Part shown: in pieces, positions 59,928 to 63,600 of the stretch
Numbering within the stretch: the first letter of the stretch is position 1
Layout of the letters: the number at the start of each line of letters is the position of its first letter
From: Magallana gigas
Lineage: Eukaryota
Direction: 5' to 3'
Assembly: GCF_963853765.1 (NCBI RefSeq)
Contig: NC_088855.1
Coordinates: 40,300,001-40,364,000, forward strand
DNA: 64,000 nucleotides
Notes under the pieces: model-generated
What the model was told of the DNA's origin: nothing
Seen by the model: the letters and a program-made list of their open reading frames with translations, nothing else
The model's database searches: none
Translations under genes and position numbers: made by a program

Positions 59928-60152
59928 ATGCTCGGTCGCGTTCGATTTGTTTTTCTCGTGCTGGTGACGATAACAATTGGACACGCCTACAATACAGGGC
60001 GATATCATCCAATCATAAAGCGAGCTGCTGTCTGTAGAGAGGAGGACGGACACTTGTGGTACGAGAACGAGTGCGTCTGCGTGGACGGAAGAACCAAGTG
60101 TTGCTGTGGATCCGAGGGAATACGATGTACCCAGCTCATCTCGTGTTGGTGA
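59928..60152 (+). CDS. Secreted 8-Cys peptide precursor A (74 aa)
   Basis: MLGRVRFVFLVLVTITIGHA|YNTGRYHPIIKR|AAVCREEDGHLWYENECVCVDGRTKCCCGSEGIRCTQLISCW*. Acceptor TTTACAG| at 59920 just before the ATG; upstream UTR exon donor ACAT|GTAAGT at 59690/59691; TATA-like TATATATA at ~59606. Confidence 0.85.
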   Translation: MLGRVRFVFLVLVTITIGHAYNTGRYHPIIKRAAVCREEDGHLWYENECVCVDGRTKCCCGSEGIRCTQLISCW

Positions 60153-60889
60153 TATGTCAGTGCTTCACCAAATTGACATTGTTATGACAGATGTGCACGT
60201 GTACACGTTTAAATGATATACACGGAAACATGAAATCATTTATAAACGATTAGTTGTTTTGTTTCTCGAACAAAGTAAAGATAGGAAATGATACTATCTT
60301 TTTATCACGTAATAAAACCATCTGAGAAATTTTGAATTTTGTTGGTTCAAGCGTATCGATATGTGTAATATTGTTTTAGCCAACAAAAAAGATCGTTTTT
60401 CCTTGGCTATAGATAAGCTATACTTGAAGTATAAGCGAAAAAAACCACCCGTCGAATAGTCGGTACTGTGTTGGTTCTGCTTTGGTTAAGTTTTTAATTT
60501 TGATCGAATTTAATTACTATAGTAAACTTTTTATATTTGATAAAAACGTTCCGATGCATGTGATGTTTGTCTTTGCAGCTGAAAAAGAAACATGCGGACA
60601 CAAAGGATACAATATCCGCTTTTGTCTACTAACATAAAGGCTATTCTTTTTTTTAAAATAATTTTTTTTTTTAAATCAGAAAAACATCGTAAATATCACA
60701 TATCCAAATGTGAAAAATCTTAAATAGATAAATTTTGGGTACATATCAAGTAAAAGTCATCTAGAAGTCATCTAAAACTAGCAAGTACATGTAATAACTC
60801 AACAGATATATCGCTATAGAAACTTGTTTATTTGACTAAAAGGCTAGTTTCACTATCCAGTCTAATTTGAATGTCTCAATGGTGCCGTC

Positions 60890-61120
60890 TCAAATACATG
60901 ACCTGCTCTCACTGCAGTGTATTTTTCCTGATCCACAACAACATTCGTGCTCAGAGTCCACACAAAAGCACTCGTTTTCAAACCACATATGCCCATTCTC
61001 GTCCGTACATATCGCGGAACGCTTCTGAATGGAGTGACCTCTCCTGGTATTGTAGGCTTCTCCAATCACCGCCAAAACCAGTACAAGAAAAACTAATCGA
61101 ACACTCGTACCGCTATGCAT
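60890..61120 (-). CDS. Secreted 8-Cys peptide precursor B (76 aa)
   Basis: MHSGTSVRLVFLVLVLAVIGEA|YNTRRGHSIQKR|SAICTDENGHMWFENECFCVDSEHECCCGSGKIHCSESRSCI*. 83-nt 5'UTR intron 61138-61220 (GTAAGT...TTTGCAG). Confidence 0.88.
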   Translation of the reverse strand: MHSGTSVRLVFLVLVLAVIGEAYNTRRGHSIQKRSAICTDENGHMWFENECFCVDSEHECCCGSGKIHCSESRSCI

Positions 61121-61273
61121 GATTGTCAAAATAAAGTCTGCAAATAAGAGAATACCCAAACAATTTAGAAACAATTCATCGTTACGTGATTCACTAAAAT
61201 ATACAAACTTTACTACTTACTTGTTGAGTTGTGGTGTCCCAGGGTTTGATAATTCCCCTGGATGCTTGTCTCC

Positions 61274-61280
61274 ATTTATA
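61274..61280 (-). promoter_or_regulatory. TATA box of peptide gene B
   Basis: TATAAAT on -, about 55 nt upstream of the UTR-exon donor; conserved in copy C. Confidence 0.7.
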
Positions 61281-63369
61281 TCAAATGCCTGAAAAAGACG
61301 TCGCAGTTAACGTGGTTACGTAAAACTTGCCACAATCTGTTCCTTCCGGATGTCCATAAATATGTATGTGCTCCGGTAACACTTAAGACTATAGCATGCC
61401 GTTCAGGTATTTTGTGTGTACCGTATCACTTCTACGCAACAGGGTTTTTTTGTTATTACGTTGTAACCTTGACATAATGGCAAATTCTAGAATTTAATGT
61501 CCAACAATGTTTAAACACATACTAGTAATCAAACAAACTTGGGAAAAAAATCCCACATCAAAATTCTCCTTCCAGCATATGTACAAGTGTAGATATTTGT
61601 AATTCATTATCGAAAAACAAATGGTGACAGAAATTAGCAAGATTTGTTTTTATTCAACAATTTAAAATCAATCGTGGCGAATGACATTTTATTAACTTGA
61701 GATTTATGACAAATCTATGTCAGGTTTCAAAAACCATTTCTAACATTTACACTTTTTATGAACAGATACCCTAGCGACACTATAAAACATTCATGGCATT
61801 AAAAGCATAAGTTTTCGACATCTTATTTAATCAGAGATATCCATTTACGTGCTAATTCCACTTGACTACAGGGTACTGTTCTTAAGCCAGAGTATTTTCT
61901 TTAAATATTTTATGCATGTCCATATAAATATAATATAGAAAGCATACTCTAAAGAAAACATAAGCTGCATTTATAATTTATAAGCAAAGTATTGATGTTC
62001 TTTAACATATTGTTAACGCAATTATACATCTCTATTTTCAAAACTAATGAAGTGTATTTTCAAAAAAACAGAGAGACTATGGCAGTTGACTGTTCAATAA
62101 TTAATAAAAATGCTAATAGTCACTGAAATCTGCCATAAATTTGATTAAGTAACCACGTCTATACACCTGTTGCTCTCCCCCCGAAACCTACTCCGTCTGT
62201 CCCTGCCCTCATCCTGGCCTTCAACTCACTCCAGTACCTAGTTTTGTCGGTCAACAATGCTCAATTTAACGTGCAACAAGAAGCATCCATTTAACTACAA
62301 AAAAAAAAACCCAAAACAAATGAGGACAAGTAATTTCATAATATATAAATTGCTAGAAAATTCTTCTATGTAATTATTATGCTATTGATTTACAGTTATA
62401 TATATTTACAGAGGTTTATTATCTTTTCCATGACTTGACCGCTAAAGCAAAGACATCTTGACCAGATCATCGTAGCTAAAACAAGTGACTAAAGCTATAT
62501 ACGTTTACAGGACCGATACTTCTGAAAAATCTTGATAGTCTAACAGTATCTAACTTATTTGAAGAGTACTTGCAATATGATAGGAAACACATTGAAACTC
62601 AGGTGAGTGTTTGGTAGGCAACTTGAAAACCATTAAACGCATGGTCATAATTAAATTCCAAAATTATTTGAAAATATATCTTGTCATTTAAGGTAACATA
62701 TTATTACACAGTGGAAGAAAAACAAAATTCAACTTTTATTGTAAATTTTCAATCAATACATCAATGACCAATAAATGATATTAATTCATTCATGATTGAC
62801 AATTTTTGTGTACCTTTGTACACAAAGGTACCTTTTTTAAGGAAAAACAATTTTGAGACTTATTTCGTTGTTTTGGAAAAAATACACAGTAAAGAGATAT
62901 TTGACCAAAACAAGATGCTCTAATTGGCTGTAGGCATTAGTCTTATTTATCATTTTTATAAAGTTACATGCATAGTCATCACAGTTCTCAAAAAAAAAAA
63001 ATTCAGCGCATATTGTTTTAACGAAAAAGCTGGAACATTCTACTATAGAAATATGTAGAAAAAAGTGGAAAAATCTAAATAATACAAAGGGGGGGGGGAT
63101 GTAGGCAACTTTACTAACAATGAAGGGCATTCGGACTAGCATAATAGATCAAAATTACTACACTTGCTAGAAATTCATAAAGATGTGAGTAATAGTTTTG
63201 TCGACACTATGTATTTTAAAGTTTTAAGTCGACAGATAATCGTTGATTATTTCTAGGTCAATGATGTATTGTACAATGCTGACAGATATATTTCTTTGGA
63301 AACTTGTTTATTTGACTCAAAGGCTAGTTTCACTGTCTAGTCTAATTTGAATGTCTCAGTGGTGCCGTC

Positions 63370-63600
63370 TCAATCACATGACCTGCTCTCAATGCAGTGT
63401 ATTTCTCCTGATCCACAACAACACTTGTGCTCAAAGTCCACACAATAGCACTCGTTTTCAAACCACAGATACCCATTCTCGTCCGTACATACCGGGGAAC
63501 GCTTCTGAATGGAGTGACCTCTTCTGGTATTGTAGGCTTCACCAATCACCGCCAAAATCAGTACAAGAAAAACCAATCGAACACTCGTACCGCTATGCAT
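63370..63600 (-). CDS. Secreted 8-Cys peptide precursor C (76 aa)
   Basis: MHSGTSVRLVFLVLILAVIGEA|YNTRRGHSIQKR|SPVCTDENGYLWFENECYCVDFEHKCCCGSGEIHCIESRSCD*. 5'UTR intron 63618-63700. Confidence 0.88.
   Translation of the reverse strand: MHSGTSVRLVFLVLILAVIGEAYNTRRGHSIQKRSPVCTDENGYLWFENECYCVDFEHKCCCGSGEIHCIESRSCD

Follow-up and report, generated by a model that had tools for sequence, protein, structure and literature searches.

Within a 64,000-nt stretch of the Magallana gigas genome (assembly GCF_963853765.1, contig NC_088855.1, forward-strand positions 40,300,001 to 40,364,000; hereafter the window), we identified three intact open reading frames (ORFs) for cysteine-rich peptide precursors, namely, g1 (59928-60152, + strand), g2 (60890-61120, − strand), and g3 (63370-63600, − strand). 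They are very probably genes of the Cragi-CCCGS family, the biogenesis and locus history proposed below being parts of the same claim. The family was named by Realis-Doyelle et al. 2021 (Mar Drugs 19:452, PMC8398477), who called the peptides of LOC105346269 Cragi-CCCGS1 and Cragi-CCCGS2 and gave them 8 Cys in 42 residues. The three window genes correspond to LOC105346269 or its paralogues, and each is predicted to encode a secreted precursor whose 42-residue product contains 8 Cys and the CCCGS motif. An earlier interpretation of the window from its letters only (the sequence-only reading) had taken the family to be undescribed; this view had to be abandoned because the named family, a strong match with the same framework, already carries the same features (8 Cys, 42 residues, and LOC105346269).

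The products of the three genes have the same order of parts, that is, a hydrophobic signal-like N-terminus of 20 to 22 residues that closes with G-x-A, 12 residues with Lys-Arg (KR) at their end, and a 42-residue C-terminal part in which 8 Cys are spaced as C-x12-C-x-C-x6-CCC-x6-C-x5-C. In g1 (74 codons plus stop), the predicted signal, propeptide, and mature parts lie at 59928-59987, 59988-60023, and 60024-60149; in g2 (76 codons plus stop), they lie at 61055-61120, 61019-61054, and 60893-61018; and in g3 (76 codons plus stop), they lie at 63535-63600, 63499-63534, and 63373-63498. The signal cleavage site was placed on the sequence by the −3/−1 rule. If the signal peptidase cuts after G-x-A, the propeptide ending in KR has the 12 residues that the sequence-only reading assigned to it, whereas the string given there, with its leading A, counts 13. 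A relaxed six-frame scan for the Cys framework hit exactly three places in the 64 kb, the three genes themselves, and none in 50 shuffles. In tblastn searches, the copies found each other with E = 1e-20 to 1e-43, and no fourth copy or fragment of this type was found in the window. At the protein level, g2 and g3 are 87% identical, and g1 is 57-59% identical to either. The ORF check, tblastn, and the scan against shuffles thus confirmed the three genes with their coordinates, translations, and Cys spacing as first read; the hydrophobic core VR.VFLVL was also common to all three, and so was the signal/propeptide/KR/Cys-rich architecture.

RefSeq and UniProt carry the CCCGS proteins as uncharacterised proteins. 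The exact g1 sequence is present in UniRef/MetaClust (P0010), and a near-identical allele, A0A8W8KB67 (P0012), falls in its 90% cluster. The g2 product equals residues 25-100 of UniProt A0A8W8KDV4 from Magallana gigas (P0005), and K1QT16 is a g2 allele with one residue different. The g3 product is the C-terminal 76 residues (25-100) of XP_034299235.1, the uncharacterized protein LOC105346269 of Crassostrea gigas (P0004). In C. angulata, LOC128189455 is a close orthologue.

The window and the published account agree on the species, the gene (LOC105346269 is g3), the 42-residue 8-Cys mature peptide, and the CCCGS motif, but they differ in the gene model. The text of PMC8398477 describes the two peptides as splice forms of one gene, whereas the window holds three separate loci. 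Alternative splicing of one gene was rejected as the source of two peptides for g2 and g3, which are two tandem genes because each comes with a separate TATA box, exon 1, intron, and AATAAA signal. The supplementary table of PMC8398477 is in conflict with the splice-form text of the same paper, for it places CCCGS1 on a 228-nt genome interval and lists CCCGS2 under the non-coding accession XR_004595693.1 of LOC105318524. The published alignment is an image, and we assigned the names to genes from lengths; 228 nt is the length of a 76-codon ORF, which suggests that CCCGS1 is of the g2/g3 type, and we infer by elimination only that Cragi-CCCGS2 is g1. In the paper library searched, no mention of CCCGS or its accessions was found in papers later than PMC8398477.

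In g2 and g3, the coding exon begins 17 nt before the ATG and is preceded by an 83-nt GT-AG intron (61138-61220 and 63618-63700, respectively, − strand) and a short exon 1 (61221-61280 and 63701-63760, − strand). The TATAAA boxes lie at 61275-61280 and 63755-63760, and AATAAA signals lie ~60 nt past the stop codons at 60827-60832 and 63307-63312. This splice model was checked exon by exon against the 100-residue models of RefSeq and UniProt: exon 1 from an ATG overlapping the TATAAA box (61273-61275 in g2), together with the 17 nt before the main ATG, translates exactly to the 24-residue extension of those models. RefSeq thus treats exon 1 as coding and starts at this upstream ATG. Because transcription usually starts ~30 nt downstream of a TATA box, a functional box would exclude the upstream ATG from the transcript, and by this promoter geometry the intron would lie in the 5' untranslated region (UTR). 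The sequence-only reading had given all three genes a single coding exon after a short 5'UTR intron. The 83-nt intron of g2 and g3 fits this description, its 5'UTR status depending on the transcription start, but g1 has only a very short candidate, a 46-nt GT-AG intron (59875-59920, + strand) just upstream of the start codon, which is kept in C. angulata. The AATAAA signal of g1 (60311-60316, + strand) is ~160 nt past the stop, and g1 and g2 are convergent with 737 bp between their 3' ends.

It is highly improbable that these loci are non-functional or non-coding and that their ORFs go untranslated. The listing of CCCGS2 under XR_004595693.1 (PMC8398477 table), the lack of a g1-type protein-coding call at the C. 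angulata locus, and the low expression would fit such a view. Against it, the ORFs are intact, and the eight Cys are kept between g1 and g2/g3 although synonymous sites are saturated (proportion of synonymous differences, pS, 0.86-0.88); the frame and the framework are also kept in a second species and in >15 allelic variants. The nonsynonymous divergence (dN) between g1 and g2/g3 is only ~0.34, and the 8 Cys together with G9, W12, N15, E16, G29, S30, and S40 are invariant in the three genes. The combination of saturated pS with this dN and these invariant residues points to purifying selection and so to real, translated genes; it indicates that g1 is probably an old, convergently oriented paralogue, from an old duplication under long-term purifying selection.

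By contrast with g1, the pair g2/g3 arose, to judge from its sequence, by tandem duplication not long ago, and its mature parts are accumulating amino-acid changes. The duplicated unit around g2 (60802-61520, − strand) is 94.4% identical over 719 nt to the unit around g3 (63282-64000, − strand), with a period of 2480 bp; the latter ends at the window edge, and its upstream limit lies beyond. Differences between the two copies are unevenly spread: 12/233 in the 5' flank, 0/67 over the TATA box and exon 1, 4/83 in the intron, 4/102 in the prepro coding part (1 nonsynonymous and 3 synonymous), and 12/126 in the mature coding part (11 nonsynonymous and 1 synonymous), where dN is 0.114 and the synonymous divergence (dS) is 0.047. 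The contrast in nonsynonymous and synonymous changes between mature and prepro parts gave a Fisher p of 0.027 for the 16 substitutions of this single pair. Such conservation of the prepro part alongside divergence of the mature part is the pattern known for conotoxins and mussel CRP-I. The 67 nt over the TATA box and exon 1 (61234-61300 vs 63714-63780, − strand) are identical while their flanks are ~5% different, and this could reflect promoter/5'UTR constraint or chance, as ~3 differences would be expected.

The number of copies also differs between sister taxa. C. angulata locus L004 (CM046781.1, 20452405-20468790) has two CCCGS genes in 16 kb, namely, g1 and, in the place of g2, a gene of g3-like sequence, against three in the window. 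Aligned with window 52876-64000, L004 shows 94% identity in the CCCGS region, compared with 98.7% for the adjoining 5.6 kb. A segment of ~2.9 kb of L004 (3284-6228) is without counterpart in the window, and a Logan contig (L001) has the same arrangement as L004. The expectation of the sequence-only reading that the family is expanding was therefore borne out, the g2/g3 duplication being recent and absent from the C. angulata assembly.

The Logan and database variants that we collected for C. gigas and C. angulata fall into 16 distinct prepro/mature combinations; together with one further homologue (P0026, described below), they contain 11 distinct mature peptides, all with the framework kept. 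One g1 allele (P0020, found on a single Logan contig) has M in place of the K of the KR site and could be either a real monobasic-site allele or a sequencing error. Apparent C-terminal extensions of Logan proteins (117-184 residues; P0001, P0007, P0008, P0015, and P0021) were discarded, since the gene caller had read the TGA stop as W.

To define the distribution of the family, an exhaustive HMMER search with g1 as the query was run against 1.84 billion representative proteins. It returned three clusters (P0025, P0026, and P0027) and only oyster sequences. P0025 is a g1 allele. P0026, with 77 residues, matched with 51% identity, and the loop that follows its CCC triplet is longer by one residue. 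Its contig has a balanced substitution spectrum and includes, oriented divergently as in the window, the 5' end of an orthologue of the 468-residue ORF that neighbours g1 in the window (88% amino-acid and 80% nucleotide identity). The balanced spectrum and the orthologous neighbour identify P0026 as a syntenic homologue in another ostreid species. P0027 was rejected as a homologue from another species: its contig (L003, Logan SRR11244946, aligned to window 60226-62721) is without any C, and C-to-T changes account for 119/124 differences from g2, which shows that bisulfite-converted C. gigas reads were assembled here. In L003, 25/25 CpG sites of the g2 unit read TpG, and the gene was thus unmethylated in that sample.

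When g2 and P0026 served as queries in word-indexed protein searches, each retrieved nothing beyond its own cluster, and a scan of JGI metagenomes gave no CCCGS match. No CCCGS-like ORF was found beside orthologues of the 468-residue gene in an ENA contig (2.8 kb upstream; orthologue 59% identical) or in Pinctada imbricata (10 kb upstream). The family is thus small, and as far as the evidence goes it appears to be limited to the lineage of the Ostreidae. PMC8398477 reported no related sequence in any other species, whereas the syntenic ostreid homologue and the C. angulata orthologue are such relatives.

All 11 distinct mature forms are acidic, with a charge at pH 7 of −2.2 to −7.4 and a pI of 4.3-5.5. 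Their calculated masses with four disulfides are 4.68-4.80 kDa for the window peptides and 4.68-5.13 kDa for all variants. Pfam and NCBIfam scans of the CCCGS peptides assigned no family, and searches of the Protein Data Bank (PDB), with single sequences and with profiles, gave nothing relevant. Two AlphaFold runs from a shallow family alignment, both of low confidence, gave four short strands forming two successive β-hairpins over residues 3-27.

The Cys pattern was compared by the sequence-only reading with conotoxin framework XIX minus two Cys. It is better described as nominal framework XXVII, which is C-C-C-CCC-C-C (PMC8949452) and has the same order of 8 Cys with a vicinal triplet, loop lengths aside; homology to cone-snail peptides was not detectable. 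The type peptide of this framework is Phi-MiXXVIIA of Conus miles (G2 superfamily, PDB 6PPC), which adopts a mini-granulin fold and has only weak anti-apoptotic and proliferative activity (PMC11035057, PMC12300008). The oyster precursors share the signal/pro/mature logic of this system. That the CCCGS peptides are toxin-like channel or receptor modulators truly related to the G2 superfamily, Phi-MiXXVIIA, and its mini-granulin fold is nevertheless very unlikely. The same nominal C-C-C-CCC-C-C pattern with its rare CCC triplet (PMC8949452, PMC12300008) and the two consecutive hairpins in both low-confidence models, as in the mini-granulin fold (PMC11035057), would agree with such kinship. However, neither sequence nor model structure showed detectable similarity to Phi-MiXXVIIA: no PDB chain was matched by single sequence or profile, and thus 6PPC was not; no Pfam family was matched, the granulin domain profile included (scan with E up to 10); Foldseek gave no significant match; and the HMMER search, which returned oyster sequences only, gave no sign of relatedness to the G2 superfamily. 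In addition, Phi-MiXXVIIA comes from a cone snail, whereas oysters are not venomous and have no venom apparatus.

Among bivalve peptides, MgCRP-I of Mytilus is organised in a similar way. Its members, encoded by a multigene family, are short and secreted; the pre-pro region is conserved and followed by a variable mature part, a dibasic site is present, and the family is subject to presence/absence variation (PMC4558851, PMC10138031). MgCRP-I is described as having six invariant Cys and three disulfides (PMC4558851), whereas the CCCGS peptides have eight Cys with a CCC triplet, and the HMMER search of 1.84 billion proteins returned no mussel sequence; the CCCGS genes were thus not placed in MgCRP-I. 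Defensins, big defensins, mytilins, and myticins are likewise small, secreted, disulfide-rich, and multi-copy, but they are cationic and have other Cys spacing, whereas the CCCGS peptides are acidic and without a Pfam match; none of the 11 mature forms had a net positive charge.

From these features we propose, with good confidence, a route of biogenesis that is read from the precursor sequence. The signal peptide would take the 74-76-residue precursor into the endoplasmic reticulum co-translationally and would be cut off after G-x-A. An enzyme of the furin or prohormone-convertase type would then cut after the KR of the 12-residue propeptide, releasing an acidic 42-residue peptide of ~4.7-4.8 kDa whose eight Cys would pair into four disulfides. 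The compact peptide would be secreted and would bind an extracellular target, and cationic membrane disruption would not be expected.

As for function, PMC8398477 leaves the question open and raises antimicrobial and neurotrophic or growth-factor roles as possibilities. According to the same paper, expression in visceral ganglia is extremely low, and CCCGS2 is more strongly expressed in female gonad, digestive gland, and mantle as well as in D larvae and post-metamorphic juveniles. We tentatively place first the possibility that CCCGS peptides are fast-evolving interaction or defence-type effectors of peripheral tissues, because they diverge faster than the neighbouring gene, dN exceeds dS in the recent pair g2/g3, the copy number differs from that of C. 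angulata, expression is mainly peripheral, and the gene body was unmethylated in one bisulfite data set. In oysters, genes that are inducible or tissue-specific typically have unmethylated bodies.

Slightly less probable is an endogenous regulatory peptide, that is, a neuropeptide, hormone, or growth-factor-like ligand that would bind an oyster receptor and act in reproduction-linked regulation, as proposed in PMC8398477. The prohormone-like architecture with its KR site, the origin of the family in a survey of neuropeptide precursors (PMC8398477), the stage dependence of ganglion expression, and the invariance of a set of non-Cys residues across old paralogues and in the other oyster species all speak for it. 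It fits poorly with the 51% identity of P0026 when the neighbour gene keeps 88%, with the excess of amino-acid changes between g2 and g3, and with the different copy number in the sister taxon. A reproductive peptide, for example one derived from egg or gonad and acting on gametes, would explain why the family evolves fast and why it is restricted to one lineage; the higher CCCGS2 transcripts in female gonad (PMC8398477), the rapid divergence, and dN > dS between recent duplicates agree with this. It is improbable all the same, as expression also occurs in digestive gland, mantle, D larvae, and juveniles, and no sex-biased ganglion expression was reported for the precursor set (PMC8398477). 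Conotoxin kinship, a gamete-peptide role, and non-functionality are thus all less likely than a peripheral effector or a regulatory ligand.

Several observations weigh against the account given here or against one of its functional readings. PMC8398477 reports no CCCGS peptide detected by mass spectrometry. The RefSeq models begin 24 residues upstream, and the signal sequence would be buried if that ATG were transcribed. Both AlphaFold models have low predicted local distance difference test values (60.8 and 63.4), and nothing below E = 5 was found when they were compared with the PDB by Foldseek. The dN/dS contrast of g2 and g3 comes from few substitutions in one pair. The acidic charge is unusual among known bivalve antimicrobial peptides and weakens the defence reading, whereas the extremely low ganglion expression and the absence of relatives outside oysters among the 1.84 billion representative proteins weaken the hormone reading.

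A more specific scenario, which we regard as doubtful, would join the structural and evolutionary threads. In it, oyster-restricted acidic four-disulfide peptides reached the rare C-C-C-CCC-C-C framework of cone-snail Phi-MiXXVIIA independently, and perhaps also its mini-granulin-like stacked-hairpin fold. They would be extracellular ligands that diversify for defence or tissue interaction, and their evolution would proceed by duplication in tandem, by changes in copy number, and by positive selection on the mature peptide.

The divergent neighbour of g1, the 468-residue ORF (55017-56423, − strand), had no Pfam or NCBIfam match and is useful as a synteny anchor. Its homologues in Mytilus, Argopecten, Mya, Dreissena, and Sinanodonta are 40-59% identical over most of the length, and that in Pinctada is 65% identical over half; the annotation of C. 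angulata gives the gene 491 residues and adds a small exon upstream. The 3.5-kb spacer between this gene and g1 contains a perfect (CT)40 microsatellite (57921-58000) and a TCTC-type repeat (58702-58787), and in the other oyster (L002) the corresponding homologous spacer measures only ~200 nt. In Pinctada imbricata, a 1974-residue product with Pao retrotransposon Pfam domains (L007, 248-6172) lies upstream of the orthologue of the neighbour gene. Elsewhere in the window, five tandem intronless ORFs of 295-316 residues lie at 4018-20294 on the + strand (4018-4968, 8795-9691, 12049-12936, 15283-16206, and 19362-20294). Each has a signal-like N-terminus, their Pfam matches are to leucine-rich repeats only, and their mutual identity is 27-40%, so that they form an array of secreted leucine-rich-repeat-only proteins. 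Runs of N occupy 6538-6684, 25271-25432, and 27865-27994 (439 bases in total).

The CCCGS family had already been described and named, and the present analysis refines known biology only modestly. It shows that the genes occupy three separate loci, that a tandem duplication took place recently, and that a second oyster has a homologue; it also brings out the acidity of the peptides, their agreement with the pattern of framework XXVII, and the substitution pattern of g2 and g3. The view of the whole locus corrects the published gene model, with separate genes instead of splice forms, and with the ostreid homologue the statement that the family has no relative in other species falls. CCCGS is an orphan family that so far looks confined to oysters. 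For a major aquaculture species, the gene-specific sequences, the masses, the acidic charge, and the syntenic anchor gene provide handles for expression and peptidomic work. If the fold proves to be granulin-like, the family would represent convergence on a rare Cys framework.

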